Assembly: GCA_964035545.1 (NCBI GenBank)
Contig: CAXIUT010000103.1
Span: 558,001 to 622,000, forward strand
Origin: Bugula neritina
Taxonomy: Eukaryota > Animalia > Bryozoa
Length of the DNA: 64,000 nt
Direction: 5' to 3'
The notes under the pieces were generated by a model, which was not told the origin of the DNA, made no database searches, and saw only the letters and a program-made list of their open reading frames with translations. A program made the position numbers and the translations under genes. This document shows, piece after piece, positions 36,301-63,100 of the stretch. The number at the start of each line of letters is the position of its first letter. Position 1 is the first letter of the stretch.

Positions 36301-39300
36301 GTTGCAAGATAGGTGTGTTGGGAGTTATCTTTCCCAAAATTTTGTTCTTTGTGTTTATACGAAGCAGACACAGGCTAATATTAGTTTTGTTATTTGTAAG
36401 AGTTTTTCTGTCTGATTGTCCATCAGCAAAAGTTTGGCCTTGCAGTTATTATGGAAATACCAGTGATGCTGGAAGACCTTTGCATTGTACACCCGCTTTT
36501 ACTATTGAATTTAGATGTTTTATTTTCCCATCCCCTCTCCTGCCCCCCTGTCCCCTCTAACAACCAGCAATCCTGACTCATGTGAATTGTGTTATTGTTC
36601 TAGAGTTGGCCCATGGGCCTACAGTATACGATTTGAAGCTTTATAGTTTACAGGCAGTGGAGATGAGTCACTGCTAAAACCCATTTTGTTAGTAGACTAT
36701 ATTGCTCTTCAATCATCAGTTTTCATATTAAAAGAGAAAGCTCATCTGCAGCGCCATTTCACAGTGTTTTATTTTGCTAGAGCAATAACTAATTTTAGAT
36801 GCCTTTGCAAACATATGAGAAATAAATGAGTGATTCTATGAAAAGAGGTGTTTGCAGCAATTGTCCACTTTTGATTTACAAGCGGCATGGAAACTTTTGT
36901 AGTTTTAAATAATATCTCCAAACTCATCACTTGCATGTGTTTATAGACTTGATAAATTTTTTTATGCAAAACTTGATGCCTGCTTCAAAGACACCAGTGC
37001 TTAATTACTGTGTTAACTGTATTGGCACGTTGCCATGAGATATTTCGTAATATTTCGCATCACAACAAACTCTTCAGAAAGTTAAGAAAATCAGTCTAGA
37101 AAGTTAATGAAATAAACCTACCAGAAAGAGTAAGCCAGATGTAACAAGTAGATCCAAAACAAGTTGATTAACAATTGAAGTTGAAATCTCCATGTAGTCA
37201 ACACTTTAGTCCTAATGTCAAATGCAAACGTCTGCAATCAAACTGTGTAGACTTCATGAGCTGGTTAGCTGAAAGGACTCATTAAAGTTCTTAACTCTTG
37301 TGTGTATAGTGATGCCCATCTTGAACTAGAGAGGGCTGACTGAAGACTGCTACTTTGTGAAAATTGACAATGCATATTATTATTATTCATTGTTTAGATT
37401 CACGACTGCCATAAACAATGATAAAATATTCATTGTTGGTACTACTGAGTAGAATAAAATATAATATAATATTATTTTCTGGACAAATAAATAATATCAA
37501 ATGCATATTATAACTTACCATAAATCTACAGTGCTTCACATCTTCACTTTTTTCTGCAATGTTATTTCTTTGCAGTTAGAAGTACTAGTTGAAAATATGA
37601 CTATGAAACATAACCCTTCAATTTCATTGCACCAGCACCAGTTGCAAGATAGGTGTGTTGGGAGTTATCTTTCCCAAAATTTTGTTCTTTGTGTTTATAC
37701 GAAGCAGACACAGGCTAATATTAGTTTTGTTATTTGCAAGAGTTTTTCTGTCTGATTGTCCATCAGCAAAAGTTTGGCCTTGCAGTTATTATGGAAATAC
37801 CAGTGATGCTGGAAGACCTTTGCATTGTACACCCGCTTTTACTATTGAATTTAGATGTTTTATTTTCCCATCCCCTCTCCTGCCCCCCTGTCCCCTCTAA
37901 CAACCAGCAATCCTGACTCATGTGAATTGTGTTATTGTTCTAGAGTTGGCCCATGGGCCTACAGTATACGATTTGAAGCTTTATAGTTTACAGGCAGTGG
38001 AGATGAGTCACTGCTAAAACCCATTTTGTTAGTAGACTATATTGCTCTTCAATCATCAGTTTTCATATTAAAAGAGAAAGCTCATCTGCAGCGCCATTTC
38101 ACAGTGTTTTATTTTGCTAGAGCAATAACTAATTTTAGATGCCTTTGCAAACATATGAGAAATAAATGAGTGATTCTATGAAAAGAGGTGTTTGCAGCAA
38201 TTGTCCACTTTTGATTTTTAAGCGGCATGGAAACTTTTGTAGTTTTAAATAATATCTCCAAACTCATCACTTGCATGTGTTTATAGACTTGATAAATTTT
38301 TTTATGCAAAACTTGATGCCTGCTTCAAAGACACCAGTGCTTAATTACTGTGTTAACTGTATTGGCACGTTGCCATGAGATATTTGGTAATATTTCGCAT
38401 CACAACAAACTCTTCAGAAAGTTAAGAAAATCAGTCTAGAAAGTTAATGAAATAAACCTACCAGAAAGAGTAAGCCAGATGTAACAAGTAGATCCAAAAC
38501 AAGTTGATTAACAATTGAAGTTGAAATCTCCATGTAGTCAACACTTTAGTCCTAATGTCAAATGCAAACGTCTGCAATCAAACTGTGTAGACTTCATGAG
38601 CTGGTTAGCTGAAAGGACTCATTAAAGTTCTTAACTCTTGTGTGTATAGTGATGCCCATCTTGAACTAGAGAGGGCTGACTGAAGACTGCTACTTTGTGA
38701 AAATTGACAATGCATATTATTATTATTCATTGTTGAGATTCACGACTGCCATAAACAATGATAAAATATTCATTGTTGGTAGTACTGAGTAGAATAAAAT
38801 ATAATATAATATTATTTTCTGGACAAATAAATAATATCAAATGCATATTATAACTTACCATAAATCTACAGTGCTTCACATCTTCACCTTTTTCTGCAAT
38901 GTTGATTCTTTGCAGTTAGAAGTACTAGTTGAAAATATGACTATGAAACATAACCCTTCAATTTCATTGCACCAGCACCAGTTGCAAGATAGGTGTGTTG
39001 GGAGTTATCTTTCCCAAAATTTTGTTCTTTGTGTTTATACGAAGCAGACACAGGCTAATATTAGTTTTGTTATTTGCAAGAGTTTTTCTGTCTGATTGTC
39101 CATCAGCAAAAGTTTGGCCTTGCAGTTATTATGGAAATACCAGTGATGCTGGAAGACCTTTGCATTGTACACCCGCTTTTACTATTGAATTTAGATGTTT
39201 TATTTTCCCATCCCCTCTCCTGCCCCCCTGTCCCCTCTAACAACCAGCAATCCTGACTCATGTGAATTGTGTTATTGTTCTAGAGTTGGCCCATGGGCCT

Positions 39301-42300
39301 ACAGTATACGATTTGAAGCTTTATAGTTTACAGGCAGTGGAGATGAGTCACTGCTAAAACCCATTTTGTTAGTAGACTATATTGCTCTTCAATCATCAGT
39401 TTTCATATTAAAAGAGAAAGCTCATCTGCAGCGCCATTTCACAGTGTTTTATTTTGCTAGAGCAATAACTAATTTTAGATGCCTTTGCAAACATATGAGA
39501 AATAAATGAGTGATTCTATGAAAAGAGGTGTTTGCAGCAATTGTCCACTTTTGATTTACAAGCGGCATGGAAACTTTTGTAGTTTTAAATAATATCTCCA
39601 AACTCATCACTTGCATGTGTTTATAGACTTGATAAATTTTTTTATGCAAAACTTGATGCCTGCTTCAAAGACACCAGTGCTTAATTACTGTGTTAACTGT
39701 ATTGGCACGTTGCCATGAGATATTTGGTAATATTTCGCATCACAACAAACTCTTCAGAAAGTTAAGAAAATCAGTCTAGAAAGTTAATGAAATAAACCTA
39801 CCAGAAAGAGTAAGCCAGATGTAACAAGTAGATCCAAAACAAGTTGATTAACAATTGAAGTTGAAATCTCCATGTAGTCAACACTTTAGTCCTAATGTCA
39901 AATGCAAACGTCTGCAATCAAACTGTGTAGACTTCATGAGCTGGTTAGCTGAAAGGACTCATTAAAGTTCTTAACTCTTGTGTGTATAGTGATGCCCATC
40001 TTGAACTAGAGAGGGCTGACTGAAGACTGCTACTTTGTGAAAATTGACAATGCATATTATTATTATTCATTGTTTAGATTCACGACTGCCATAAACAATG
40101 ATAAAATATTCATTGTTGGTACTACTGAGTAGAATAAAATATAATATAATATTATTTTCTGGACAAATAAATAATATCAAATGCATATTATAACTTACCA
40201 TAAATCTACAGTGCTTCACATCTTCACCTTTTTCTGCAATGTTGATTCTTTGCAGTTAGAAGTACTAGTTGAAAATATGACTATGAAACATAACCCTTCA
40301 ATTTCATTGCACCAGCACCAGTTGCAAGATAGGTGTGTTGGGAGTTATCTTTCCCAAAATTTTGTTCTTGGTGTTTATACGAAGCAGACACAGGCTAATA
40401 TTAGTTTTGTTATTTGTAAGAGTTTTTCTGTCTGATTGTCCATCAGCAAAAGTTTGGCCTTGCAGTTATTATGGAAATACCAGTGATGCTGGAAGACCTT
40501 TGCATTGTACACCCGCTTTTACTATTGAATTTAGATGTTTTATTTTCCCATCCCCTCTCCTGCCCCCCCCCTGTCCCCTCTAACAACCAGCAATTCTGAC
40601 TCATGTGAATTGTGTTATTGTTCTAGAGTTGGCCCATGGGCCTACAGTATACGATTTGAAGCTTTATAGTTTACAGGCAGTGGAGATGAGTCACTGCTAA
40701 AACCCATTTTGTTAGTAGACTATATTGCTCTTCAATCATCAGTTTTCATATTAAAAGAGAAAGCTCATCTGCAGCGCCATTTCACAGTGTTTTATTTTGC
40801 TAGAGCAATAACTAATTTTAGATGCCTTTGCAAACATATGAGAAATAAATGAGTGATTCTATGAAAAGAGGTGTTTGCAGCAATTGTCCACTTTTGATTT
40901 ACAAGCGGCATGGAAACTTTTGTAGTTTTAAATAATATCTCCAAACTCATCACTTGCATGTGTTTATAGACTTGATAAATTTTTTTATGCAAAACTTGAT
41001 GCCTGCTTCAAAGACACCAGTGCTTAATTACTGTGTTAACTGTATTGGCACGTTGCCATGAGATATTTCGTAATATTTCGCATCACAACAAACTCTTCAG
41101 AAAGTTAAGAAAATCAGTCTAGAAAGTTAATGAAATAAACCTACCAGAAAGAGTAAGCCAGATGTAACAAGTAGATCCAAAACAAGTTGATTAACAATTG
41201 AAGTTGAAATCTCCATGTAGTCAACACTTTAGTCCTAATGTCAAATGCAAACGCCTGCAATCAAACTGTGTAGACTTCATGAGCTGGTTAGCTGAAAGGA
41301 CTCATTAAAGTTCTTAACTCTTGTGTGTATAGTGATGCCCATCTTGAACTAGAGAGGGCTGACTGAAGACTGCTACTTTGTGAAAATTGACAATGCATAT
41401 ATTATTATTATTCATTGTTGAGATTCACGACTGCCATAAACAATGATAAAATATTCATTGTTGGTACTACTGAGTAGAATAAAATATAATATAATATTAT
41501 TTTCTGGACAAATAAATAATATCAAATGCATATTATAACTTACCATAAATCTACAGTGCTTCACATCTTCACCTTTTTCTGCAATGTTGATTCTTTGCAG
41601 TTAGAAGTACTAGTTGAAAATATGACTATGAAACATAACCCTTCAATTTCATTGCACCAGCACCAGTTGCAAGATAGGTGTGTTGGGAGTTATCTTTCCC
41701 AAAATTTTGTTCTTTGTGTTTATACGAAGCAGACACAGGCTAATATTAGTTTTGTTATTTGTAAGAGTTTTTCTGTCTGATTGTCCATCAGCAAAAGTTT
41801 GGCCTTGCAGTTATTATGGAAATACCAGTGATGCTGGAAGACCTTTGCATTGTACACCCGCTTTTACTATTGAATTTAGATGTTTTATTTTCCCATCCCC
41901 TCTCCTGCCCCCCTGTCCCCTCTAACAACCAGCAATCCTGACTCATGTGAATTGTGTTATTGTTCTAGAGTTGGCCCATGGGCCTACAGTATACGATTTG
42001 AAGCTTTATAGTTTACAGGCAGTGGAGATGAGTCACTGCTAAAACCCATTTTGTTAGTAGACTATATTGCTCTTCAATCATCAGTTTTCATATTAAAAGA
42101 GAAAGCTCATCTGCAGCGCCATTTCACAGTGTTTTATTTTGCTAGAGCAATAACTAATTTTAGATGCCTTTGCAAACATATGAGAAATAAATGAGTGATT
42201 CTATGAAAAGAGGTGTTTGCAGCAATTGTCCACTTTTGATTTACAAGCGGCATGGAAACTTTTGTAGTTTTAAATAATATCTCCAAACTCATCACTTGCA

Positions 42301-43145
42301 TGTGTTTATAGACTTGATAAATTTTTTTATGCAAAACTTGATGCCTGCTTCAAAGACACCAGTGCTTAATTACTGTGTTAACTGTATTGGCACGTTGCCA
42401 TGAGATATTTGGTAATATTTCGCATCACAACAAACTCTTCAGAAAGTTAAGAAAATCAGTCTAGAAAGTTAATGAAATAAACCTACCAGAAAGAGTAAGC
42501 CAGATGTAACAAGTAGATCCAAAACAAGTTGATTAACAATTGAAGTTGAAATCTCCATGTAGTCAACACTTTAGTCCTAATGTCAAATGCAAACGTCTGC
42601 AATCAAACTGTGTAGACTTCATGAGCTGGTTAGCTGAAAGGACTCATTAAAGTTCTTAACTCTTGTGTGTATAGTGATGCCCATCTTGAACTAGAGAGGG
42701 CTGACTGAAGACTGCTACTTTGTGAAAATTGACAATGCATATTATTATTATTCATTGTTTAGATTCACGACTGCCATAAACAATGATAAAATATTCATTG
42801 TTGGTACTACTGAGTAGAATAAAATATAATATAATATTATTTTCTGGACAAATAAATAATATCAAATGCATATTATAACTTACCATAAATCTACAGTGCT
42901 TCACATCTTCACTTTTTTCTGCAATGTTATTTCTTTGCAGTTAGAAGTACTAGTTGAAAATATGACTATGAAACATAACCCTTCAATTTCATTGCACCAG
43001 CACCAGTTGCAAGATAGGTGTGTTGGGAGTTATCTTTCCCAAAATTTTGTTCTTTGTGTTTATACGAAGCAGACACAGGCTAATATTAGTTTTGTTATTT
43101 GCAAGAGTTTTTCTGTCTGATTGTCCATCAGCAAAAGTTTGGCCT

Positions 43146-43152
43146 TGCAGTT
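43146..43152 (+). repeat. Left target-site duplication copy, (T)GCAGTT
   Basis: ggcctTGCAGTT|gcagtatatc. Uninterrupted monomers contain ccttgcagttattatgg only once. Confidence 0.9.
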
Positions 43153-43191
43153 GCAGTATATCTATTATCCTATACCACTATAGAAGTCGTA
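43153..43191 (+). repeat. Left terminus: degenerate TIR with subterminal palindrome TACCACT-N5-AGTCGTA
   Basis: Left cagtatatctattatcctataccactatagaagtcg aligns without gaps to the reverse complement of the right end, cagtgattcacacggcttttacgactgtcagggtcg (19/36). Confidence 0.7.
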
Positions 43192-43284
43192 GAGAACTTC
43201 GGGTCAATCAGTGGTAATGGGATTTGTATTACATTATATAGATTTCGTCAACGATCCTAGCCTAATGAGGCGCAATTGAAATAA

Positions 43285-43335
43285 GTAATTGATTGGCTGG
43301 AGGTACAACCAGTTCAACTTCATTGGTTAGGCAAC
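43285..43335 (+). promoter_or_regulatory. Paired reverse CCAAT boxes near the left end of the element (putative promoter)
   Basis: tgattggctgg (43290-43300) and cattggttag (43321-43330), about 30 bp apart. Motif evidence only. Confidence 0.35.
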
Positions 43336-44896
43336 GATCGTAACAACTAAAACAAGTGGTGGATACAGTTAGGGTTGACATTAAAACACGGCAATTTCTA
43401 GCAGTAATTTGCATTCTAAATCAATTTTTTCATGCAAAAGGTTTAAGAAGCTAGGAGTTATGAGAAAGAATAATATAATGTAATAATTTTGATTGAAAAG
43501 CTTTAACAAATGCAGGTCTGAATTTTTATTTAAATCCGCTCCTTTGAGACTTTGTTCTAAACAAAGGATATTAATTACTGTAGCTATTAGATAAGAATTT
43601 AGTCTTGTAAGTATTTTGAAAGCATAATTGTCTTCTCACTCAATTTCAGCTCATATTATAAATTTATCAATCTTCATTATAAAGACATAATTGTCTTCTC
43701 ATTAAATAATAGTCTATTACAACTTTATTGCTACCATAATATAATATCATTTTGTAAAATGTTTTTATTTTCATAGCATTTTTTGCTTAGTATTATAAAA
43801 TTTTATGCTGCATTGTATATAGCCTACATATGCATATAATGAGCTGCATGTAGTAGACGAAAAGAAATATCGCAATTATATAAAAGATGTAGAAATTATT
43901 TGTAGAATATAAACAAATGCAAAATAATTTAACAAACATATAACTTTACGAACCTCAGCATTTAAATTTAGTTTGCGGCAAGAATAATTTTTTGCTTGTA
44001 AAAAATTAAGTAAAAGATACCAACAATTTTGTTTCTTGTTTTTAATGTTATATTTGTTAACATTTTAGATGTGCCTGTATTACACTATATTGAGTTCTGA
44101 TTATTTTGGTTTAACATTGTAAATAACATATTGTGCAGTATATACAAAATGAGCACATATATAAAACATATACTCATAGTGAAAGTATAAGTTCTAGTTT
44201 TTTTTGCAAATTCATGCATACTATTTGAAATATATGCATACAACTTGGTGTTTCTGATTTGTACATGAACAATTTTATTGCTAAATGCTAAGTAATTATT
44301 TAAATTTTTCTACAACAAATTCGTCGACATGTTTTATATATACCATCTTTTAGCAAACACTTGCAACATTCCCATGCAATTACATATAACTGTAGCTATA
44401 GTAAGCTGTTCATAAAATAGCAACTATTATGAGTGCTGCATTTTTACACACACACTCACACATGCACACACACATGAAGAAAAGCAAGCATATAGTTTAC
44501 TGTCATGAGTTACTTGCAAAAATAAGTTGAAATATATGTTGAAGACTTCATACATTAATACAAATGGTATACTCTCAGACATGAGAGGAGCGACATAGTG
44601 CACATGCTCTTAGGAGTTGCATTATCACCTTCTTTCTTGGTGTCATCAAAAATATGGCATTGAAAGAAGACAATCACTGCTTTGGGGTTTACATATTTGT
44701 ATTCCTTTTAAAACGTAGTTAAAAATATATATACATATTTTCTAACTTGAAAAAATGCTCTATGTAGCTGCTTATATTTTAAAAAAAATTTTAGGTAGCA
44801 AAAGTAAGGAATTTTTGACATATTTACTGCAGGGGTGTGATAAACAAATGGACATAACATGCTTGTTTTAAAGCTAAAATATGATGTAACAGAATT

Positions 44897-44899
<3 letters not shown>

Positions 44900-44964
<65 letters not shown>
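44900..44964. repeat. (TA)n microsatellite, about 32 units
   Basis: Uninterrupted tatatata run. Confidence 0.98.
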
Positions 44965-44967
<3 letters not shown>

Positions 44968-45400
44968 ATATACATAATGAATGTCATTTCACTATATAAC
45001 AAGAAGAAATAGGCTGCTATTTTTACACTTCTGTGCAGTAATTTAAAAGCTTTGATAGCTTAACCTTCTTCATCTGGATAACAAATTTTAGCGTGGGGTG
45101 CGGGTTAATAAAAATGTAATCACAAGAACATGTACATAACTTAATTTCTCCATTATTGCACCAACTATCAATATTTACTTAATAACTAAACCCTATATTT
45201 AGCCCAGTGTTCAGTATCTAACTAATATGTATGTACTATATACACTGTCCACCTGTTGAGTGTTATTTAAAAAGTGAAAGAAATTCTACAACTATAGTCA
45301 TATTTGACCCATCACTATTATTACACATATCAATGTGTAAAATTAGTAAAAATAATTTAGTGGAAGTATTTGACAAGAATGCAAGATTGCAAAAAATTTA

Positions 45401-45472
45401 GCTAACTGCGAGGATTGAACCCATACCCAATGAGTGCAAAGGAAACGCGGTTTACCACGAAGCCAATGCATC
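45401..45472 (-). mobile_element. tRNA-derived SINE-like head with Pol III A and B boxes
   Basis: Minus strand TGGCTTCGTGG (A box, 45455-45465) and GGGTTCAATCC (B box, 45412-45422) at tRNA-like spacing. The acceptor and anticodon stems do not pair, so it is not a functional tRNA. Confidence 0.55.
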
Positions 45473-47471
45473 ACCTTAGGAAGAATGCCAATACATAAGG
45501 GATTATACTATAATGATATAAACAACAGCTAGAAAAATGAGTGGGTTATATTCCATCAGGGTGTTTACTAGCAGTGGATTGCCATCTTGTTTTAAAATTG
45601 GCCTATGACTCTGTTGCTACTTGCAAAGGTATCTTGATTAAATAAACCAACGGTTAAAAATAAACTGTAGTTTGTATATTATTACTAAGGCACAGCCAGC
45701 GGTCAGAGCTATGGTATATAAATATACACTGATGTACTAGGACCTAGGTAATAGATTGACAAGTCAAATTATCTTTTATAGGTAAACACACTTTGGTTTG
45801 AGAAAACATGCATGCAGCCTTAATTTTAGGTTTACGTCCGCAAATCATGAAAAGATCTAAACTAATATTAGAGGTAAATTTTAAAAATTAAATTAATTTT
45901 ACTTATTTTTACAATAACAAATTTTTTGGAGAAAATAAGTTGCTTCCTTTTTGTTGCAATGATATTCAACTTGCTTGAGCTATGGCCATCAGTGATGAAA
46001 TTTGAAACCCTGATTGTTTTGAGATAACTTTGTGACTTGTTATACATTTTTGCATATCTTTACCAACATATTACTTGATTCATGATAGTTTTCACATTGC
46101 AATTTATGGCATCAGTTGAGACTTGCACTCTGACAAAATATTAACAAAGCCAAACATATGGCCACACTACAGTGAAAGCTGGTTGGTTATATTAATTGTG
46201 GCTGCACTAGTCATGGTCCTAGCAGTTGGCCTACCATGGTATTGCCAGGTGCGAGCAAGCTTACAAGCATTTATATAGCTATAGCTAAACTGATAAGCTT
46301 ACAAAACATGTTGGCTAACATTATGCAGTTCACAATAGGCATATGGAAAACAAAGATGGTCAAAGGGTAATGATATTGTGGTTGACATAATATGTTAACT
46401 ATAAATAGTTCACGAATGCAGTTCCATTAGGCCTACTGGATTACCACTTATTTGCACTAACAGAATGTGTTACAAACGGGCCAGCAGGCAACTAAACCGT
46501 GTAATGCACAACTATTGACGTTATGCTATGTCATTATGCTCTGAAGTACGTTCTGTCATGGCTGAAAGTCACACTACTCTACACTTGCAGTAGCAATTCG
46601 TTTACTACTTCCATCACCAACACTTGCATTTTTATAGGGGCCAAATTCCTGTACCAAATGGTGTGCTATTCTTTCAAAACAGAGTACTATAAATATTATT
46701 TTGCTCATAGATTTTAGCAGACAAAGAATTTATACTAAAGACTACCCTATAGAAATTCTATTTAAGAAAAAACTTCAATCCTAAAATACTACCTATTGAC
46801 TTATACAGCTGAACAGAAAAAGAAGTAACCGCAGTTCGAGTATTTAGCATATCTGAGCCACAATTCAAAAATAAATAGAAGCATAGCACATGTGCATAGT
46901 TAATATCATATTATAATAGTTCATATAGTTTGTTTGCCTTTGACAGCATATTGAATATAATTTCTCTACTTGGCTGTAGGTAAGCCCTGCAGTTTTTGTT
47001 TTTATCTTAATTTACAATGAAAGAATAACTTGAAAAATGCAACCAAAAACTTATTATTGAAAAAAGGCTTTTAACTACTCTGCTAACTATGGCTTTTAAT
47101 TGTCAATAAATGACCCTTTTAATCTAACTATTGCATGGTGCTGAGACGACTGATAATTATGTGTAAAAATGTGTGCAGGTGGGATTAATTAGCTGAGAAA
47201 CTTTATTAACCTAAGCTCTTAAACTACAAGAGCGTTGATTAGGGGTGCATGGTAAAACGAAAGTTATTTCACTGCTTTTCCTCTATAAAACTGAAGCCTT
47301 TCCAAATATATTTTTATTGCACCAGCTGGTACAATCTAAAAATAAAACCAAGCTGAACAATCAAATTAAAAGAATAGGCGTTTTATATCTTAACTTGTTG
47401 AAATGGTGCAGTAAAATTTGTTTGTTGCCTTTTAGGTAAATATTCACCAGGGCTGACATTGACTTCTTTAT

Positions 47472-47632
47472 CACTGCGTTTCCATGACTTCGCATAATGC
47501 GAATGAATTCTGTACGGATTATTTGCGGTTTGTGGTTTGCATTAACTTATAGTTGCGTTTCATCGGATGTAACTGTTCCCATTAGCCGAATGAAAAAATC
47601 CATTCGCATAATGCGATAATGGAAACGCAGTG
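47472..47632. mobile_element. Small MITE (161 bp) with TIRs of about 32 bp
   Basis: cactgcgtttccatgacttcgcataatgcgaatg ... cattcgcataatgcgataatggaaacgcagtg. Confidence 0.8.
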
Positions 47633-47769
47633 TACTTCGCTTCTATGACTGAGCATTTTGTGAATTTGTAGTTGCAGTAACTCATCAGTTGTGGTGTCCT
47701 TCGTTATGTAATTAGTTCCATGAGGTGATGAGAAATCCATTTCGGAATGAGAATGATGAATTGCAGTGC
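47633..47769. mobile_element. Older diverged tandem copy of the same small MITE
   Basis: Start acttcgcttctatgactgagcattttgtgaat resembles actgcgtttccatgacttcgcataatgcgaat. End gaaatccatttcggaatgagaatgatgaattgcagtg resembles aaaatccattcgcataatgcgataatggaaacgcagtg. Confidence 0.55.
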
Positions 47770-48360
47770 ATGTAGGCTGCAGCTTCCAATTTTCTTAAAT
47801 CAACCATTAGGCTATGTGTACAAAAAAAGGCAAAATACTTTGCTGTGGCCAACAGTCTGAAAAATACCAGCTAGCACTGAATAAAGCACAATAAGTATAG
47901 CTTATTTGCAATGCAATGTTGAGTTTTAGAAAGGTCTCAAGTTAGTGTTATTTCCTCACCACTCATGTGGAAAATTTACCAATACTCCCTATTGCTAAGA
48001 CTTTGTGCTATGCATCTAATTACTAAGGTGTGAGTTTTTAGAACCAATACTAGAATGTAACTCCTTGCGATTATGTGGGAGAGAGATGACATATTTGTTG
48101 TCAGTCAATATATATTGTAGGCTTGCCTATTACAGAGCTCAAGCCTAGCTCTTTACAATAAAAAGTACAAAGGTATGAAAGAACAATAGTATGACAACAG
48201 AACCATGCGGTATCGTAACAATCAGGATGCAAATCATCTTGATTATATAGCTAGATGCTTTTCTTCTCTAACGTAGATGTTCTTGTCAATAGTGAAGCTG
48301 CACTTAAACTCAAATGGCCACTTTCTTTTAGACCTGTAAAAGCAAAATATATTTCAACAG

Positions 48361-51292: not shown

Positions 51293-51518
51293 CATCATAA
51301 TTCATATGCTGTGTAATCAAGCCACATCTTGAGATATAAATATTTTTCTGCTCCGTGGTCTCTTCAGTACTTAGACCTATGCCTTGCCACACTCTACCAC
51401 TGCACTTAGCCTTCAATCATAAATCACGATGACATGCAGTGTAAATGTTGCAGCTGTGGCCTGGTGAATAAGGATATTTTCCAACCACAATTTTTAACAA
51501 AACAAAACAAGTTCTCAC
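51293..51518 (-). pseudogene. KDZ transposase pseudo-exon containing the GxGLxxGExxE motif region
   Basis: ttttttag|...VVGKYPY / RPQLQHLHCM / AKCSGRVWQGIGLSTEETTEQKNIYISRCGLITQHMNYD|gtaac. Matches the family pattern SGR..GxGLxxGExxEQxNxxLSR...TxxM. The HAxxH motif is absent and GE has become EE. Confidence 0.85.
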
Positions 51519-52032
51519 CTAAAAAACTAGAAATCAAATATAAAGAAAAATAATTGATTTTTAGTTTGATTATATGGTTTAAACCTGCATTTGCATAGGG
51601 GTAGTTGAAGTCTAAACATTCACCAGATTCGCATACATTATTTTCAATATTTCATGTTACCTAAAACTAAAATATATCTAATACTAAAACATCTATTAAA
51701 GTGTAGTAACTGACATGTTCAAATGTGTGCCTTAGCGAACATCACACTCAAAAAGTAATCGTGAGAGGAAACAAGCTTTGCTTGCATTTTAGAAGTCAAG
51801 AGAAGTACCGTCACCTTACATTGGTAGCAACAGATTGTGTACCAAGAAATTGTTTCTAAAACTCCACAAAAATATAATTAAAACGTTGAAGATTCTACAG
51901 GCAAAAAGTTCTGAATAGATTTTTATAAGCAGAGGACAAATTAAATTTTGCAAATAATTTCAAGCACAAATAGTCACTAAACAAACTTTATATGCATATA
52001 AATAAAAGCCAGCAATACATTAATTAACTTAC

Positions 52033-52158
52033 TTGCATTATATAAGGATAAGCACAGATCTCCCTCTCTCCATATCCAATGCCTTACATATAAGTGCCTG
52101 AAACCGTCTTTGCAGCTTTCCATTCAATTCCTCCACAGTGGTCACCAACTGAAATATT
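52033..52158 (-). pseudogene. KDZ transposase pseudo-exon (CG..WxAA and M..GE..AYP motifs)
   Basis: ttttcag|NISVGDHCGGIEWKAAKTVSGTYM*, then KALDMERG / EICAYPYIMQ|gtaagt. The intervening DxxG..CRHG segment expected in the family is missing and there is a 1-nt frameshift. Confidence 0.8.
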
Positions 52159-52639
52159 CTGAAAAATTAAATAATAATTTAACGTACCCATACAATTCTT
52201 ACTTGTTTGCTCATATTGAAAACAAAAAAAATGAAAAAATAAAACAAGACATGTGACCATCGAACAATAGTTGGTAAATAGTATTGTACTGTAAATCATA
52301 CGCAATCATTATCAAGAGTCTATAAAAATCATTCCAAACAGATAACTTTTAAGTTGTAGTCAGCAGCTCATATGAACAGAGTTGTCATTGTGAACATTTC
52401 AATAATGAAAAGGATATTTATATTCCCATTGAACTTAAATACCCATATTATAAGTACATCTAATAACGCAGCAAACTCCCTTTTAAAATCACATTAATAT
52501 AGCATCAGCAAAAGAACACTAAATGGCAAAAGCAGTTTGAAAACCAATTTCAGATTGAAAATTTAATTGATCAAATATTGCTTTTTTATTTAGATTAAGA
52601 CTCATTGCGGTAAACAAGCAAGAAAACTTTGTGATATGG

Positions 52640-52900
52640 ATAAGAAAGGTTTTAAAACAAAAGCCATGATTTTCAAAAAGTCTGCACCACACTTAAAATC
52701 AACACCATCCTAGATGCTACACCAGAGCAACGAATAATTAAAACAGTATACCTTGGAGAGTTAATAACTGATATTGCATGGTTAAAATGAACAAGAAATA
52801 AAGAGAAGAAATGAACTGGCAAAAAATGCTTTCCAGGATATTTCTTAAGTATATTGACATTAGAAAAATCAAAATACAAACACGAGAGAAATTACTATGC
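52640..52900 (+). mobile_element. Degenerate RTE-like LINE reverse-transcriptase fragment, inside a transposase intron
   Basis: KTKAMIFKK ... YLGELITD ... EQEIKRRNELAKNAFQDIS* / RKIKIQTREKLLC matches the KTKxM..YLG..EIKRRIxxAKxAF..LxxRKIxxxTR pattern, with frameshifts. Confidence 0.8.
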
Positions 52901-54039
52901 AAAAAATTCTTCCCCATATAACAAGCAGATATTATTAGTTATTTATCAGTAATGCATCTACTAGGCATAGACTCACAAGGTTTCATAGTTGATTGTAAGA
53001 ACAAGGTCGGCAAAGGTTTTTGGATGTTGCAATAAAGATAAAACTCAAACCTTAGTGTGTTAGGATAAATGAGCAAAGACTCTACCTATGCTACCAGAAG
53101 CAGCAACTGGTCCCAAAAAGTGGAGTAAAACTTTACACTTTTAATGATGATGTTTTATGATCATTATTATTAAAAAAATGTATATCATACTGATAAAACT
53201 ATAGCGGTAAATGTGAAACATATAATTCATATCAATATTCACACCGTATAAGAGTATTTACTTAAAATGGCTTATTCATTTGGAATTGTAACAATACTCA
53301 CAAGTAACAGAACACGTACCAATAAAATAACAATCACTGTAAAAAATGAGTATTTAACACCATAAAAACCTAAAGCATTGATACTTGTGGTACATCTAGT
53401 ACTAAAGCACTTACAGACTTACAGTGGTAGTCTGTTATCACTAAATCTAATGATTTTCACAGTTCTCAATCAAGGTATTAGACACCATAACTACTAGTGG
53501 GCCTACTACTACTACTAGTACTAGTAACTAGAGTACTACTACTACTAGTACTACTACTGTACTAGTAGTAATAATAATTTATATCAAAAATGAGCACATT
53601 GTGATTGTTTTACTAATAATATTCTCAACCTAATAGCAATAGTACCAACCTGATCCGTAATGGGTTTTCCTGAAGAATGGAACTAGATTGTAATTACCGA
53701 CATGTGTATACATACTAAATTAGTCTCTAATAATATATTATTATGAAATTTATGATTATCGCCCCATTTGCGGAGTAGTCAGGCCGAGTTTATTATGAAC
53801 ACAAGAGTCGAGTAAATTTGCGCAGATAAATTACTGGCCACCATGATAGACCAGACCTGTTTTGACCGAATATCGGTTCTACTTGAACACTAGAATCGCC
53901 CCCAAGGTCCAATGCCTAATTGAGTCCGCGGCTCCTTTGGTCAAATGACCCAAAGATTCAATTTCAATTTTGAATACCATAGGCGTGCTCAAACTTATAG
54001 TTATAGGCTAGGGCATATGCATGGTTATTATTGGAAAAT

Positions 54040-55000
54040 AGATTAATAATTAGTAATACTAATACTAATAGTAATACGAATGCACTAATGGTAATAGTTA
54101 TAATGTCACGATTAGACTTTACATTTGCTCTTACTCTTAGTCTTAGTTATAATGATAATCATATTTATAAACATGAATATCGCTCTCACTCTGACTCACA
54201 CTCTAACTCTAAGTCTAAGTCTATCAGCATCACTATCAGTATCACTACCAATATGAATATAGCTATAACTATAAGTATTACTCAATCAGTTTCACTATGA
54301 CTATGATAAAATCATAAAATGATAAATAATCCACTAATACTTAGTGATAACAGTTACTGATTAGAGTGATCTTAAATTAGTAATCAGTATAGCTGTGAGT
54401 ATAACTCACTGTAGTACTCTTAATCATAATCATAATGGTAGTGGTATGAGTATCACTATCAGTATGGGATCAACTAATACTAATAGTAATACTGTAAAGT
54501 GTAATACTAATACTAATACAGTATTACTAATAGTAATAGTATCAAATCGAAATTAATCAATAGTAAATATAGTTATACTTAAACTTAAAGACTTATACTT
54601 ATAGTAGTAATAGTTATACTTATAGTATTAGAACCTTATACTATGTCTATAGTCTATGACGGCATGACATACCCATAAATGGTGATGTCTAAGTCCTACT
54701 TCAAAGTAGCAGTTAAACTTAAAGTTTGATATTCTACTCTGTATAACCGAGACTGACTATCATACACCTTACATGTCATGCTGAGTATCATTATGATTAT
54801 CACTTGAGGTTTATGAGTATCACTTTCAGTAAGATAATCATACTATGACTATGAGTTATACTTATAGTCACACCCCGATACCCATACTTCTACTTCTAGT
54901 GATCTACTCTTACTCCTAGTTCTACGGGCAAGGCTACTCACTCATACTCATAGTCATAGTAACTGATAGTGGTGTAACCTAAACTAATACTATAACCAAT
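54040..55000. repeat. Degenerate 3/6-bp periodic low-complexity region
   Basis: Arrays such as agtaatactaatactaatagtaat, actctaagtctaagtctatcagcatcactatcagtatcact and agttatacttatagt. Confidence 0.75.
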
Positions 55001-56649
55001 GCCAAAAGACAAGGTAAAGCTAAAATTAAAAATAGAAACCAAAGGGTCATAAATCATATATGTAATGGTGTTTTAGTTTATGATTGTTTATGTTCATTTT
55101 ATGTTTATTCTACCAAGTACCAACTCATCAGTCACTTAGTTTTATAGTGATAATTATACTTACACTTATAGCCTACACCCTATAGCTTATTTAATTTTGA
55201 CTCTACCTTGCCCTTTGGCAGTGATTTAGTTTTAATTAAATTGTTATATTTAATGTTTTTCATGAACTTTATGAAATTTTATTGATAAGATATCATATAG
55301 TAATAGTGATAATTGTATCATAATGATGATATTGATATATAAAACATTATGACCATCAATGTATCACTGTGAATGTAATAATTTTTATATAAGTAAATTA
55401 ATTTACTATTAAATAAAACTTGCGCAAGTTTATAGTTGGCATCCCTGTGAGAAACCCCTGATGGGAAAGGTTTTTTGTTAAATGGGGCTAAGCAATTATT
55501 TGGTTGGAGCATAGGAGTAATTATGACTGGATGCTTTTCCTAACAAATGACAGTAATGAAAAATTGAATATGATTGTTATCTAATCATTATGTAAGGTTA
55601 ACCTTTATGTTAGGAATCTCAATAGCACGAGCATACAATTCAATCATCGCCATGTTGGCTGTGATTTTCTTAATCATACTTATTAAGCTTGCAGTTTTTG
55701 ATATTTGATAGATATAGTATTCATAATAATAGTCACTTAAATTTGATGGTAATATTGATCAATAAATTTTAAGTACACTGACTAAATCTAATGATTAGTG
55801 GTAATGAAACTAACGACACTCAAACTGATTTGCCTCAAGACTGAACTATGTTTTCTAAGTGATGACAGACTAAGATTAAGTTTAATAATAGGGCAGTAGT
55901 ACATGTAACTAAAAGTATAAGCTAAAGTATACAACCATAAGTGAGTAACCATGATGTTATCTCGACCAACGCAATCTCAATACCAATACCTGATTTATTG
56001 AAAATGTTACTATATATTTGAGTATGAGTATGTAACTGTATTAATATGATAAAACTTATACAGTTATGCACATAGTGCTAGTGAAAGTATCTCAAACCGT
56101 TGCAAAATCCAACTTTATTCAAAACTTTGCTACAAATACTTGAGTTTTTATTTTAAGGTTGATCATAAAAAGTTAAAATTATTGTGAATAAATTAATTTT
56201 AACTGTTCATTTTACTTCAACATTATCTTTTAATTTAATAAAGTTTTAATGAATATTAATTTATTTATTTTTCAACAAGTCACTGTTTTAATTAATATAG
56301 GTATAAGTTTAGGTATCTAATAACTTTAACCATCATTATATTCATCATTTTTAATTTGTATGCCAATTGCTAAATTATAATACCTATACTGATATCACCA
56401 CTGTTGAATTATTTTTCTTATTCACCTATGTTTGTAATACGGTTATTGCTTGTTAGTTAGTAGCATATATAACAACTATAGTAATAGCTATAACTACAAG
56501 CATATTTAATATGCTAAGGTATATTGAGAGATTGTCATAAATATCTCAGTGATCATATACATGACACCCTTAGCATTCATGTCTTGAACATCTAGCCATA
56601 GCTCCCTTTATATTGTTTCCAGTGTTGAATGCCCATCCTGCAAGAATGC

Positions 56650-57085
56650 TTTGCCTCCATTTGAGAGGTGGTAAATTGATTGGATTTTATGTAAAATTCC
56701 TTAAGCTCTTGTTTCAGGACATCCTCAAACCTTAGATATAAGTTCTTCTAGCTGGATGAGTTCCTTTTGATATTAATGCATGCAATCGAGTGCGGCGGAT
56801 GAGATACTTTGGCATGTTGACCAGCCCAGTGAAGACAGAAGAAATTCAGTTTTGAAGAAAGAGAATCCGAGTCTGTGATTTCAAATACATCTTCATTTAT
56901 CATTTTATCTTCCCAGATTTTACTCAACATGCATCTTAAACTCCAGGTATGAAAAGTGCTGAGCTTTGATTCTTGCAGTCCACATGTTGCCCATGTTTTT
57001 GATCCACAAGGAAGAATGCTGAGAACACCAACTGCGTAGACTTTTCTTTTGGCGTGAATATTAGGGTGGTTGTTTGTCCATATTT
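56650..57085 (-). mobile_element. Degenerate RTE-clade LINE fragment (region C-terminal to the RT core), inside a transposase intron
   Basis: WTNNHPNIHAKRKVYAVGVLSILPCGSKTWATCGLQESKLSTFHTWSLRCMLSKIWEDKMINEDVFEIT...LHWAGQ...LRFEDVLKQELK matches the RTE pattern KxxVYxxxVLSxLLYGSETW..FHxxCLRxILxIxWxDKVxNxEV..LRWAGH..RFKDxLKxDLK. Confidence 0.85.
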
Positions 57086-57840
57086 GCTAGTTCACAAAGT
57101 GGAATTATTTTGGTATTTGTCATATCCTGCAGAGCCCATTTAAATGTTTGAGCAGAAAAAGTAAAAATAAATATTTTGCAGTGTGTTTACTGTTTTGATG
57201 ATGGTTTTAGGGAAACATCTAGATTTACCATTCATGTACTTGTGACAGGCCTGTGTTTCAGCGATTATAGGAGAGTATAATTTTTCTTTAATAGAAATTG
57301 AGTCATGCAAGGGAAGCTGGTTTCCTTACTTTATTAAGCAAAATTTGCTATCACAACAACAGAAGTGTTGCTAGCCTTGATTTGGAAACATTTTATATTT
57401 ATAACTCTGAAGCCTATTTTGAGACATTTGGCTGCATGTTGGATAGATTGCATAGCATCTTTACTTGCGCTAATACTTAGAAGCATTTACTTGGTTTTCC
57501 TATAGTTTTATTTTGAATGTTTTTATGATATATTGCAGAACTGTGGGTTCATTCTACTTGTAAGTATATTCCATAGGTCTAACTCAAACCCTGTGAATTT
57601 TCAAGTTAATATGGCAAGCTATGATGAAAGAAATGCTAAACTAGACAGGTAATAGAAAAGAAAGTCCGATAACTTTTTTAATTGTAATTTAAATTACTTA
57701 GCTTGCATTACTCAACAGTATGGTAGCAGTGGTAGAACCAGCAGCAGCAGCAGCAGGAGTAGATTATAGTATAGTAGTATTGATAAAATGATTGATAGAT
57801 TAGAACTGTAATTTTGAATATTAAAAATATGACAATGCCA

Positions 57841-57930
57841 CTGTGCGCCATAAATTTCTTGTTGGCCATTAAAATCAGCCATTAAATCAGTTTTCTTTTG
57901 GCTAGAACAAGCACTGCTGCCTGGACATAG
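57841..57930 (-). pseudogene. KDZ transposase pseudo-exon around the CPAC...DGNxKL motif (first catalytic Asp region)
   Basis: Reads CPGSSACSSQKKTDLMADFNG, then frameshifted NKK(L)WR, consistent with a decayed CPAC-x-DGNxKLxR motif. Confidence 0.5.
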
Positions 57931-58569
57931 TAATATATTATATGTATGGACTGTATGTTAATTATATGTAGAGGAATTATTTTTGCTAGCTTTAATAAAA
58001 AACCCTGCTCGTTTCTCATATTATTGTATTGTCAGTTTCAGCAATTTCAGGCCAGATAAATTTAAATTATACCTTGCAAATTTTAGGCCTGTTCCAGTCT
58101 ACCTGTCAACACATTTGTTTGATCTAATCTAATTATGATGGCCTTCCAAGCAATGTAGTTAGCAAAAGTGAGAGAACTAATATTGCTTTTTCAGCCTATA
58201 TTATGTTTGAAACCAGTAAAATAATAGAAATCATGAAACTAGTAATAGGCAATCCTATAATGCTGTTTAATAAACTTATTTGCGCTGTTACTTTAGTGAT
58301 TTCGACGCTGTTTTATAAATTATTAGCAATCTTTTAAAAATGAATAAATATACATTTTCTTTTAGTATGTCACCAATTGGAATATTTTGACCTGTATACC
58401 TATCTAGTGGAGGTGTTAATTTGTAAACATATTGGTTTTACCAAGATCAGTGATTAAAGCAGTTGCTGAAAGCCAAAATAAAATGCTAACTAAAGTTCAT
58501 ATCTAGTGGGCTACAATTTGCCAACTTCTATAAAGCATATAATAGCTAGTAATTGTTTCTATGCTGTAC

Positions 58570-58807
58570 CACTTGACGGTCTGTTCTCTTTTACCTTACT
58601 CTATATTATGCTGTATAAATTCTAGCACACCTATCTGGTTTTTAATCATTTCTTGCACCATATGCCAATAATTTTTACGTAGATGCATACAATCGGACAG
58701 CTGGATAGCCTGGCTATTGTGGAGAAGCATCATAACCACCTGCTTGGTGTTGGAGCTGAGTGCATATCAAGGTGGGTAGCACAACTTCTTAGTTCATAAG
58801 TAGCAGC
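58570..58807 (-). pseudogene. KDZ transposase pseudo-exon, N-terminal cysteine-cluster (CxC3-like) region
   Basis: Manual translation gives VVLPTLICTQ...Q*PGYPAVRLY and, in another frame, WHMVQEMIKNQIGVLEFIQHNIE*GKRE. This resembles the LPxxxC..GYWP..W/F..G.S..F segment of animal KDZ proteins. Confidence 0.5.
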
Positions 58808-58944
58808 CTAGTTTTTTAAAAGGTTTGACTATATTAAAATATAAACATTTTGTTATTGCACTAATACAATGATAAAAATATGAGCAAACAGTTTCCAATA
58901 TAACTTGCTGCTGGTAAGATTTACAGTATTTGTAGTAGAAACAA

Positions 58945-59152
58945 TATTAGTAGTGGTAAAAGTAGTAGTAGCAGTAGTAGTAGTAGCAGTAGTAGTAGTA
59001 GCAGCAGTAGTAGCAGTAGTAGAAGTAGTAGCAGCAGCAGCAGTAGTAGAAGTAGTAGTAGCAGTAGCACTAGTAGTAGTAGTAGTAGCAGTAGTATAGT
59101 AGTATAGTAGTAGAAGTAATAATAATAAAATAATAGAATTATTAGTAGTAGT
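58945..59152. repeat. (TAG/CAG)n trinucleotide microsatellite
   Basis: Runs such as agtagtagtagcagtagtag. They explain the poly-T/V/L ORFs in the track. Shorter related tracts lie near 53503-53570 and 57717-57780. Confidence 0.95.
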
Positions 59153-60063
59153 GGTGAAGTTGTTTTTGGTTCTGACGTTAGTACTGTTAGCGGTAGAGAT
59201 GGTGTTGGTAGAAATAGGATTAGTGGTTGTGCACTCATAGTTGAAGGCATAAAGCATAAACCAGAATTGAATACATATATAACATAGATATGATATGAGT
59301 TCTTATTTATATTGATTTACTATCTTGCATGAACATGGCATTTTCGCTATCAACATTAGTGTTTGTATTATACACTTTCACTAAACAAGCTTGTTAAATT
59401 TATAAAAAATTATGTAGGTGATGACTGTTGCATATCTGTGTTTAATTTTAAAAATATCATGTTGCATAATTATTTTTTAGGTGTCTGGTGAGCGGACGAC
59501 TTCATTTTCGGCTGCTTCATGGCACCTTTATTTTCGGAAAAGATGTAACCACTTGTAAAATCAGTTTTTTTATGGTGAACTTAACAATATAATGTTTAAC
59601 AAAATTCTTTCTTGGTTAAAAATAAAGGTATACCGTCTTTGGCTTTCTGTTATTTCTATATTGTGTTCTTCTGTTGCTATGTGTAATTGATGAGATGACT
59701 CCAAACTCTTGCACATCCGCCACAATAAAGTAGATAATTTTGCTATGGGCATCAAGATTTTGTTATAAGTAGATATAGTTTTGCAATGATAGTGTTGATG
59801 CTGCAGCAGGTAACATTCTAGTAGGATAAACCAAACAGAATTTAAGCTAAAACATTCTAAAAAAATACAGCATCGCTTGAGCCACCTTGCCTTCTCTCTT
59901 TTCTAGGCAAAAGTTGTTAGCTAAATAAGGAAAAGACAAATTAATGATTTCTGTGAGAGTTGTCTACTACAAAAATTACTTAGCAGATCATCATTAGTAA
60001 CCATAACAACACGTACATGTTTACAGCACTCATGTGCTCTCTTTGTTCTGATTCGTCAACAGT

Positions 60064-60180
60064 AGCGCCCTAGACAGTCGATGTTATCGCACGAAAATAT
60101 ATTGTTTATTGCGGCTAATATCGCGAAATGGCAAAATGAGGATCGACCCTGACAGTCGTAAAAGCCGTGTGAATCACTGT
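60064..60180 (-). repeat. Right terminus: degenerate TIR with two copies of a CGMCC-N5-AGTCG motif, CpG-rich
   Basis: atcgacc-ctgac-agtcgta (60142-60160) and agcgccc-tagac-agtcgat (60064-60082). There are 11 CpGs in 60051-60180 against a CpG-poor background. Confidence 0.7.
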
Positions 60181-60186
60181 GCAGTT
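60180..60186 (+). repeat. Right target-site duplication copy, (T)GCAGTT
   Basis: gaatcactgTGCAGTTattatgg, matching the left copy exactly over 7 bp. Confidence 0.9.
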
Positions 60187-63100
60187 ATTATGGAAATACC
60201 AGTGATGCTGGAAGACCTTTGCATTGTACACCCGCTTTTACTATTGAATTTAGATGTTTTATTTTCCCATCCCCTCTCCTGCCCCCCTGTCCCCTCTAAC
60301 AACCAGCAATCCTGACTCATGTGAATTGTGTTATTGTTCTAGAGTTGGCCCATGGGCCTACAGTATACGATTTGAATCTTTATAGTTTACAGGCAGTGGA
60401 GATGAGTCACTGCTAAAACCCATTTTGTTAGTAGACTATATTGCTCTTCAATCATCAGTTTTCATATTAAAAGAGAAAGCTCATCTGCAGCGCCATTTCA
60501 CAGTGTTTTATTTTGCTAGAGCAATAACTAATTTTAGATGCCTTTGCAAACATATGAGAAATAAATGAGTGATTCTATGAAAAGAGGTGTTTGCAGCAAT
60601 TGTCCACTTTTGATTTTTAAGCGGCATGGAAACTTTTGTAGTTTTAAATAATATCTCCAAACTCATCACTTGCATGTGTTTATAGACTTGATAAATTTTT
60701 TTATGCAAAACTTGATGCCTGCTTCAAAGACACCAGTGCTTAATTACTGTGTTAACTGTATTGGCACGTTGCCATGAGATATTTGGTAATATTTCGCATC
60801 ACAACAAACTCTTCAGAAAGTTAAGAAAATCAGTCTAGAAAGTTAATGAAATAAACCTACCAGAAAGAGTAAGCCAGATGTAACAAGTAGATCCAAAACA
60901 AGTTGATTAACAATTGAAGTTGAAATCTCCATGTAGTCAACACTTTAGTCCTAATGTCAAATGCAAACGTCTGCAATCAAACTGTGTAGACTTCATGAGC
61001 TGGTTAGCTGAAAGGACTCATTAAAGTTCTTAACTCTTGTGTGTATAGTGATGCCCATCTTGAACTAGAGAGGGCTGACTGAAGACTGCTACTTTGTGAA
61101 AATTGACAATGCATATTATTATTATTCATTGTTGAGATTCACGACTGCCATAAACAATGATAAAATATTCATTGTTGGTAGTACTGAGTAGAATAAAATA
61201 TAATATAATATTATTTTCTGGACAAATAAATAATATCAAATGCATATTATAACTTACCATAAATCTACAGTGCTTCACATCTTCACCTTTTTCTGCAATG
61301 TTGATTCTTTGCAGTTAGAAGTACTAGTTGAAAATATGACTATGAAACATAACCCTTCAATTTCATTGCACCAGCACCAGTTGCAAGATAGGTGTGTTGG
61401 GAGTTATCTTTCCCAAAATTTTGTTCTTTGTGTTTATACGAAGCAGACACAGGCTAATATTAGTTTTGTTATTTGCAAGAGTTTTTCTGTCTGATTGTCC
61501 ATCAGCAAAAGTTTGGCCTTGCAGTTATTATGGAAATACCAGTGATGCTGGAAGACCTTTGCATTGTACACCCGCTTTTACTATTGAATTTAGATGTTTT
61601 ATTTTCCCATCCCCTCTCCTGCCCCCCTGTCCCCTCTAACAACCAGCAATCCTGACTCATGTGAATTGTGTTATTGTTCTAGAGTTGGCCCATGGGCCTA
61701 CAGTATACGATTTGAAGCTTTATAGTTTACAGGCAGTGGAGATGAGTCACTGCTAAAACCCATTTTGTTAGTAGACTATATTGCTCTTCAATCATCAGTT
61801 TTCATATTAAAAGAGAAAGCTCATCTGCAGCGCCATTTCACAGTGTTTTATTTTGCTAGAGCAATAACTAATTTTAGATGCCTTTGCAAACATATGAGAA
61901 ATAAATGAGTGATTCTATGAAAAGAGGTGTTTGCAGCAATTGTCCACTTTTGATTTACAAGCGGCATGGAAACTTTTGTAGTTTTAAATAATATCTCCAA
62001 ACTCATCACTTGCATGTGTTTATAGACTTGATAAATTTTTTTATGCAAAACTTGATGCCTGCTTCAAAGACACCAGTGCTTAATTACTGTGTTAACTGTA
62101 TTGGCACGTTGCCATGAGATATTTGGTAATATTTCGCATCACAACAAACTCTTCAGAAAGTTAAGAAAATCAGTCTAGAAAGTTAATGAAATAAACCTAC
62201 CAGAAAGAGTAAGCCAGATGTAACAAGTAGATCCAAAACAAGTTGATTAACAATTGAAGTTGAAATCTCCATGTAGTCAACACTTTAGTCCTAATGTCAA
62301 ATGCAAACGTCTGCAATCAAACTGTGTAGACTTCATGAGCTGGTTAGCTGAAAGGACTCATTAAAGTTCTTAACTCTTGTGTGTATAGTGATGCCCATCT
62401 TGAACTAGAGAGGGCTGACTGAAGACTGCTACTTTGTGAAAATTGACAATGCATATTATTATTATTCATTGTTTAGATTCACGACTGCCATAAACAATGA
62501 TAAAATATTCATTGTTGGTACTACTGAGTAGAATAAAATATAATATAATATTATTTTCTGGACAAATAAATAATATCAAATGCATATTATAACTTACCAT
62601 AAATCTACAGTGCTTCACATCTTCACTTTTTTCTGCAATGTTATTTCTTTGCAGTTAGAAGTACTAGTTGAAAATATGACTATGAAACATAACCCTTCAA
62701 TTTCATTGCACCAGCACCAGTTGCAAGATAGGTGTGTTGGGAGTTATCTTTCCCAAAATTTTGTTCTTTGTGTTTATACGAAGCAGACACAGGCTAATAT
62801 TAGTTTTGTTATTTGCAAGAGTTTTTCTGTCTGATTGTCCATCAGCAAAAGTTTGGCCTTGCAGTTATTATGGAAATACCAGTGATGCTGGAAGACCTTT
62901 GCATTGTACACCCGCTTTTACTATTGAATTTAGATGTTTTATTTTCCCATCCCCTCTCCTGCCCCCCTGTCCCCTCTAACAACCAGCAATCCTGACTCAT
63001 GTGAATTGTGTTATTGTTCTAGAGTTGGCCCATGGGCCTACAGTATACGATTTGAAGCTTTATAGTTTACAGGCAGTGGAGATGAGTCACTGCTAAAACC

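Follow-up and report, generated by a model that had tools for sequence, protein, structure and literature searches.

A macrosatellite interrupted by a 17-kb insert

The window analyzed in the present study, a stretch of 64,000 nt from the bryozoan Bugula neritina (assembly GCA_964035545.1, contig CAXIUT010000103.1, positions 558,001 to 622,000 of the forward strand), consists of a macrosatellite with a period of 1340-1345 nt that is interrupted only once, by an insert of 17,026 nt (43154-60179) splitting one 1340-nt monomer. The origin of this insert, and of the enzyme that may have moved it, is the subject of what follows. As the limit of Tandem Repeats Finder (500) is below the 1340-nt period, the array was traced instead by k-mer offset counts, which returned a period of 1340-1344 nt for the window, and by BLAST, in which the monomer at 37501-38840 recovered a further 31 whole monomers (98.3-99.8% identity), incomplete ones at both ends of the window and one split copy. 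Rfam scans, tRNA scans and open reading frame (ORF) checks of the satellite gave no match and no meaningful ORF. The features on which the argument turns are given below, with monomers named by their first position.

1..42865, forward strand: non-coding macrosatellite array made up of 31 whole monomers (1340-1345 nt) and one partial monomer
36161..40180, forward strand: empty paralogous block of three monomers (36161, 37501, 38841), with 1, 1 and 0 differences from the occupied block
41526..43145, forward strand: left flank, comprising monomer 41526 and the initial 280 nt of the split monomer
43146..43153, forward strand: TGCAGTTG, the left copy of the target duplication, perfect over 7 nt and with G as the eighth
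43154..60179, no strand assigned: inserted element, 5'-CAGTAT...ATCACTG-3', with no terminal inverted repeat and no coding capacity
43154..43183, forward strand: left terminal 30 nt, the whole left end retained in a miniature derivative (contig of public run X2, see below)
60007..60179, forward strand: right terminal 173 nt retained in the miniature derivative, CpG-rich, with CGAC-N7-GTCG
60180..60187, forward strand: right copy of the target duplication, TGCAGTTA
60188..62579, forward strand: right flank, the remainder of the split monomer with a private T at 60377, plus monomer 61240, identical to 38841

The two parts of the split monomer overlap by monomer positions 281-287 (TGCAGTT), and this overlap therefore represents a target duplication, which can be read either as 8 bp with one mismatch or as a perfect 7 bp (TGCAGTT) followed by one extra base. 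All 34 intact sites read TTGCAGTTATTATG, with A as the eighth base, whereas the left junction reads TGCAGTTG, with G; the empty target site in the paralogous block, at 37781-37788, is TGCAGTTA. The left boundary of the element was fixed with the help of contigs from four public runs (X1-X4), which were aligned onto window positions 42700-44890. In run X4, which carries the same organism label and derives from another sample, one contig matches the window from exactly 43154 and is preceded by 333 nt of unrelated, non-satellite DNA. Because the homology begins at 43154, the element starts at this base and G43153 lies outside it, where it may be a second private change of the split monomer.

No terminal inverted repeat was detected in the terminal 400 nt, the local alignment of which scored 18, below the mean of shuffled controls (20.7); the two ends have only CAGT in common, without an inverted repeat of even 10 nt. 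Spaced palindromes were considered as end signals and discarded, as they occur only singly and the k-mers common to both ends stay at chance level. Strict targeting of the word TGCAGTTA also appears unlikely, given that the X4 copy sits after TCACAATA. The ends are distinguished by their CpG content, which, per 100 nt, amounts to 2.7 in the leftmost 300 nt (43154-43453) and to 4.0 in the rightmost 300 nt (59880-60179), against 1.0 for the whole element and 0.7 for the satellite; CpG-rich ends would be expected if the ends alone remain under selection.

Copies at other sites and movement in trans

The longest ATG-initiated ORF of the insert has 134 aa and lies inside a trinucleotide repeat, and the longest stop-free stretch extends over 149 codons. 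There are 111 stop-free pieces of at least 45 aa, about twice the number predicted from base composition. Among 98 of them, compared with Pfam at E values of up to 0.1, no transposase, reverse transcriptase, chromodomain or zinc domain was found, and a Pfam comparison of 10 chosen pieces gave no transposase, reverse transcriptase or chromodomain either. One weak match among the 98 pieces, to AA_permease_2 (E = 3.8e-4), is probably due to chance and could be a captured gene fragment.

The element is not single-copy, in keeping with the original prediction, which had proposed a search for near-identical copies elsewhere. Look-ups of exact ORFs led to two contigs of the JGI metagenome 3300003318, L002, corresponding to window positions 44703-48193, and L001, corresponding to 48112-54541. 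Over about 9,500 nt, 18 substitutions separate the two from the window (0.19%, a copy 99.8% identical), in addition to changes in microsatellite length, and they are as stop-rich and ORF-less as the window copy. More distant copies, at about 3-4% substitutions from the window, were found in runs X4, X2 and X3; over 1,050 nt, one contig has 41 substitutions along with 15 gaps. When the JGI metagenome contigs were scanned for exact occurrences of the two termini, 0 matches were returned, and exact look-ups of nine other ORFs, among them one spanning the right junction and the commonest satellite ORF, were unsuccessful.

The same left end adjoins a satellite site in the window and two non-satellite flanks in X4, where left ends were read; the second X4 contig combines a different flank with an internal deletion of 257 nt (43211 to 43469). 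In a contig of run X2 the match to the left part of the element stops at 43183, and the next 20 nt have their only counterpart in the window at 60007-60026; the contig represents a miniature derivative of about 200 nt in which just the two ends are kept. A contig break at 43184 in run X1 suggests that miniature forms are present there too. In X1, which probably represents the source species, contig depth, taken without a single-copy reference, is about 1,400-1,580 for letters of the window type, about 600-750 for those of the X4 type and about 1,900 for contigs common to both; both subfamilies are present in X1, roughly 2:1. Compared with all four runs, the window copy itself is set apart by 6 or more private substitutions in 1,737 nt. 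At 43445, 43546, 44065, 44373, 44685 and 44785 all four runs, joined by L002 at 44785, read another base, and these private letters are either true private mutations or assembly errors.

At 42848-43143 the satellite is not covered by any contig of runs X4, X2 and X3 (zero depth), and the adjoining 42700-42847 is very deep in the same runs. It follows from the zero depth that the element copies in those runs are not located in this satellite, and the satellite itself appears to differ between samples or sibling lineages that have the transposon family in common.

A target duplication and exact ends indicate integration by a transposase-like cut, and since the element has no coding capacity, it cannot have supplied its own enzyme. 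The original prediction had proposed that this defective 17-kb element was moved by a transposase encoded elsewhere, arguing from the flanking monomers. We also regard movement in trans as most likely; the best evidence for it, in our judgment of these sequences, is provided by the copies at 0.2% and about 3-4% divergence and by the deletion derivatives rather than by the flanks. Divergence of 0.2% or 3-4% cannot erase a transposase gene of several kb, since it would have to yield a stop every dozen codons and to remove every domain signal; consequently, the common ancestor would already have been gene-less. If a gene-less ancestor nevertheless gave rise to copies at new sites, then the element would have been moved in trans, and it is on these low-divergence, gene-less copies at different sites that the proposal now stands. 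One circumstance weighs against this reasoning, namely that the comparison with the diverged copies covers the left 1.7 kb, to the exclusion of the region in which a transposase relic was suspected.

An exact left end at different loci, no transposase gene and deletion derivatives keeping the ends are what a non-autonomous DNA transposon displays in general. We therefore hold it somewhat probable that the insert belongs, as a non-autonomous copy without genes, to a multi-site family of cut-and-paste DNA transposons in a bryozoan lineage. According to the scenario that we propose, the family would have been without a working transposase gene before the present copies diverged, and a transposase encoded elsewhere would have recognized the two short ends of the element, of which 30 nt on the left and at most 173 nt on the right would suffice for persistence as a miniature derivative. 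A staggered cut of 7-8 bp would then have been made at TGCAGTT(A) in one 1.34-kb satellite monomer and the 17-kb element joined there, most likely once local duplication or conversion had rendered the blocks 36161-40180 and 41526...62579 near-identical. The insert with its ends, its target duplication and its lack of genes, the near-identity of its flanks and its copies elsewhere are observed directly; movement in trans, the sequence of events and the superfamily are inferred from them.

Such behavior is familiar from classical non-autonomous DNA transposons, e.g., Ds of the Ac/Ds system and miniature inverted-repeat transposable elements (MITEs), which are likewise defective, keep their ends and depend on a transposase made elsewhere, and in which internally deleted and miniature derivatives also occur alongside longer forms. 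Unlike these, the insert is of full size (17 kb), apparently having decayed and not simply been deleted. Movement of a dead DNA transposon in trans is, in this respect, textbook biology and ordinary non-autonomous behavior. If an intact partner with the same ends were found, it would make a clean pair of autonomous and non-autonomous elements and define the minimal ends of a transposon without inverted repeats.

Remains inside the element and its superfamily

The original prediction assigned the element to the KDZ superfamily on the strength of a heavily decayed transposase, and reported decayed long interspersed elements (LINEs) within it. The inner features relevant to these assignments are the following.

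48619..49122, no strand assigned: nested foldback or MITE-like inverted repeat, with 165-nt arms that are 92% complementary and a 174-nt loop, also present at L001:6271-6754
51267..52493, reverse strand: putative KDZ transposase relic, recognized by eye from FNGNI (~52430), a GER-like word (~52100), FVKNCGW (~51500) and GIGLSTEETTEQ...TQHM (51390-51300)
52305..52308, no strand assigned: site of 1,172 extra nt in L001 (L001:1902-3073), with a terminal TRHG word
53005..53341, no strand assigned: 337 nt in the window copy, absent from L001
56500..57086, reverse strand: possible remnant of the C-terminus of a LINE ORF2, 5'-truncated and frameshifted, recognized by eye from ..FH..LRC.L.KIW.D...NE.V.....L.W.G..

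Of the transposase claim, the lack of a working gene in the insert is confirmed (no ORF beyond 149 codons); a remnant specific to KDZ received no statistical support from Pfam, phmmer, the ESM atlas or a word search, and this weighs against the assignment. With Pfam at E values of up to 10, the candidate relic region, taken as 29 pieces of 20 aa or more, returned no KDZ match, and 22 pieces of the 1,172 extra nt of L001 returned nothing related to KDZ; neither set gave a transposase, reverse transcriptase or chromodomain. No CxC-type zinc-chelating domain or SWIM was matched by Pfam among the pieces of the insert or of the relic region. Two relic pieces gave no usable match in the ESM atlas, and a word search with the relic piece gave no match. 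With phmmer, a 75-aa piece (51427-51651, reverse strand) compared with 1.84 billion representatives had 5 matches, all of them repeat proteins (WD40, PKD, LRR_5, Chlamydia PMP). No family was matched in either of the large indel segments (1,172 nt of L001 and 337 nt of the window), and the former may either have been deleted from the window copy or have been inserted into L001.

What speaks for the relic, then, is the words recognized by eye, which stand on one strand within 1.2 kb in what we take to be the order of fungal KDZ proteins, judged by eye rather than with a tool and unconfirmed by any search. The TRHG word in the extra 1,172 nt of L001 agrees, again by eye, with the CRHG segment that the original prediction had listed as lost. 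By chance alone, 34,000 codons should yield tens of stretches that agree with one such motif at 4 of its 8 fixed positions; weight comes only from the common order of the words, and that order was judged after looking. As the copy is non-autonomous, a missing KDZ domain does not exclude membership in the superfamily.

The structure of the ends is the better argument for KDZ than these motifs. Within the superfamily, Kyakuja elements have 7-bp target duplications and 5'-CA..TG-3' ends without inverted repeats, and duplications of 8 bp characterize Zisupton and Dileera (PMC12730594). In Cryptococcus, the elements KDZ1-3 and KDZx1, of 6-11 kb, generate 8-bp duplications and are mobile in the laboratory, KDZx1 being without inverted repeats (PMC11343200). 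The insert fits the 7-bp length, with TGCAGTT perfect, or the 8-bp length, with the eighth base G against A, and it also has the CA..TG termini (CAGTAT to CACTG). With no inverted repeat, it would belong to the repeat-less type and not to the classical Zisupton. Thus, its duplication of 7 bp (as in Kyakuja) or 8 bp (as in KDZx1), its 5'-CA..TG-3' tips, its lack of terminal inverted repeats and its large size liken it to these fungal elements (PMC12730594, PMC11343200), from which it differs in that their length is 6-11 kb and they code for a KDZ transposase carrying a CxC zinc domain, whereas the insert has 17 kb, no detectable domain and an animal host. To Zisupton of fish and other eukaryotes, and to Dileera, it is likened by an 8-bp duplication (PMC12730594) and as a cut-and-paste transposon in animals; it departs from Zisupton, for which terminal inverted repeats are described, in having none. 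Taking end structure and weak motifs together, we place membership in KDZ (Zisupton/Kyakuja-like) somewhere between an even chance and a fair likelihood.

It counts against this placement that an 8-bp duplication and CAGTG-like tips also fit hAT transposons. The same mechanism, a non-autonomous cut-and-paste element moved in trans, might well have operated with a transposase of hAT or of another family with 8-bp duplications, a possibility that we hold to be real though clearly the less probable one. The consensus of hAT tips is YARNG, with which the right tip CAGTG is compatible; hAT elements produce 8-bp duplications, and no search detected a KDZ domain. Families named hAT7, moreover, have 7-bp duplications (PMC12730594). 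This alternative is weakened by the fact that Pfam detected no hAT transposase or dimerisation domain, nor any other transposase domain, and that ends with only CAGT in common and no 10-nt inverted repeat are unusual for hAT, where short inverted repeats of 5-27 bp occur, whereas ends without inverted repeats have been described for Kyakuja and KDZx1 (PMC12730594, PMC11343200). The by-eye motifs in KDZ order also favor KDZ over hAT.

To our knowledge, KDZ-type transposons have barely been described in animals, and we know of no documented trans-mobilization of defective KDZ copies. For Cryptococcus it was reported that no mobilization of clearly non-autonomous copies was observed and that only intact copies were observed to move (PMC12810828). 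The most ambitious version of the KDZ reading, in which a giant transposon family without inverted repeats is currently active in the bryozoan, moves dead full-length copies of 17 kb in trans and prefers satellite arrays, appears improbable to us.

The decayed LINEs found no support in the searches. The sequence at 56500-57086 (reverse strand) reads like what we take to be a conserved LINE ORF2 tail, with stops and a frameshift; Pfam, word search and PDB search were all negative, and with only a by-eye resemblance in its favor a LINE remnant at this place is plausible but unproven.

Age of the insertion

All 34 monomers were included in a MAFFT alignment, in which typical pairs of monomers show 5-25 differences in 1,340 nt. 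The split monomer is far closer than this to one particular monomer upstream. Its left part (42866-43152) is 100% identical to 37501-37787, and its right part (60180-61239) has 1 mismatch in 1060 against the monomer at 37501-38840, namely T versus G at 60377, so that after rejoining the split monomer differs from monomer 37501 by 1 position, or by 2 if G43153 is counted. The two halves are thus not substantially diverged from this monomer, in agreement with the original prediction, and the rare variants which it had noticed are confirmed: TT at alignment columns 720-721 occurs only in monomer 37501, the split monomer and monomer 62580, and G at column 1289 only in monomer 37501 and the split monomer. 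Its mention of a single private change agrees with T60377 and becomes doubtful with G43153 as a possible second one. The neighboring monomers match equally well (MAFFT), with 0 differences between 61240 and 38841, 1 between 41526 and 36161 and 0 between 41526 and 34821. Altogether, the three-monomer block around the insert and the empty block 5.4 kb upstream are separated by 2 differences in 4,020 nt.

The most economical history has the three-monomer block duplicated or converted once and the element inserted once thereafter, and from these flanks we consider an insertion after the last local duplication rather probable. The young age put forward by the original prediction can be followed to this extent: the flanks are near-identical, whereas the recency itself is plausible but insecure. 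Several points weigh against it. The array is under concerted evolution, several sets of monomers being identical (1258, 5287 and 7972; 13341, 20057 and 25429); it is turning over in multi-monomer blocks and visibly homogenizing. In such an array the identity of the flanks dates the last homogenization and not the insertion, and provides no clock. The left 287 nt of the split monomer are identical in 10 other monomers, monomer 37501 included, and hence only its right half is diagnostic. Furthermore, the 8-bp reading of the target duplication already has a mismatch at the junction, which leans towards an older insertion.

The insertion might thus be old and its flanks homogenized by gene conversion or unequal exchange, with tracts halting at the 17-kb heterology; the copy number of the element in the array would then have grown by segmental duplication, and recent activity of a transposase would be unneeded. 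We rate this as unlikely, though by no means negligible, for the turnover is fast, with many identical monomer sets and five-monomer blocks duplicated without a difference, and the left 287 nt are uninformative. A duplication mismatch (in the 8-bp reading) is, moreover, unlikely at the youth implied by 0.05% divergence, and one of the two private changes, G43153, is situated right at the junction, the place least accessible to conversion, the other (60377) lying about 190 nt inside the right half. The private substitutions of the element (at least 6 in 1,737 nt) are not clearly above those of the split monomer (2 in 1,340 nt) either. For an old insertion, on the other hand, the same donor block must have served for in-register conversion at least twice, each time sparing the element, and of these conversions only the right-hand one must be specific, as compared with one duplication and one insertion in the reverse order of events. 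G at column 1289, restricted to monomer 37501 and the split monomer, and the identity of 61240 and 38841 fit a single block duplication. Homogenized flanks also leave unexplained how a gene-less element arrived at other loci.

Single insertions are known to be carried along in satellite higher-order repeats, where an insertion in a homogenizing array may be copied together with its flanking monomers; the present insert resembles them in its setting and differs from them in that it occurs once in the window, with an empty paralogous block 5.4 kb away. As a caution of method, insertions are poorly dated by how alike their satellite flanks are. Finally, that the insert is no transposon at all and represents a 17-kb genomic piece captured at a staggered double-strand break during repair is very improbable: it has no inverted repeats and no genes, and the likeness of its left end to the target (GCAGT) could reflect microhomology, but the same left end adjoins unrelated DNA to the base in another sample (X4), internally deleted and miniature forms retain the tips, and several near-identical and 3-4% diverged copies exist.

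Within the array to the left of the insert, a higher-order duplication of five monomers (6,716 nt) was observed at 13341-26769 with zero differences, in which monomers 13341, 20057 and 25429 are identical, as are 14682 and 21398, and 16025 and 22741.

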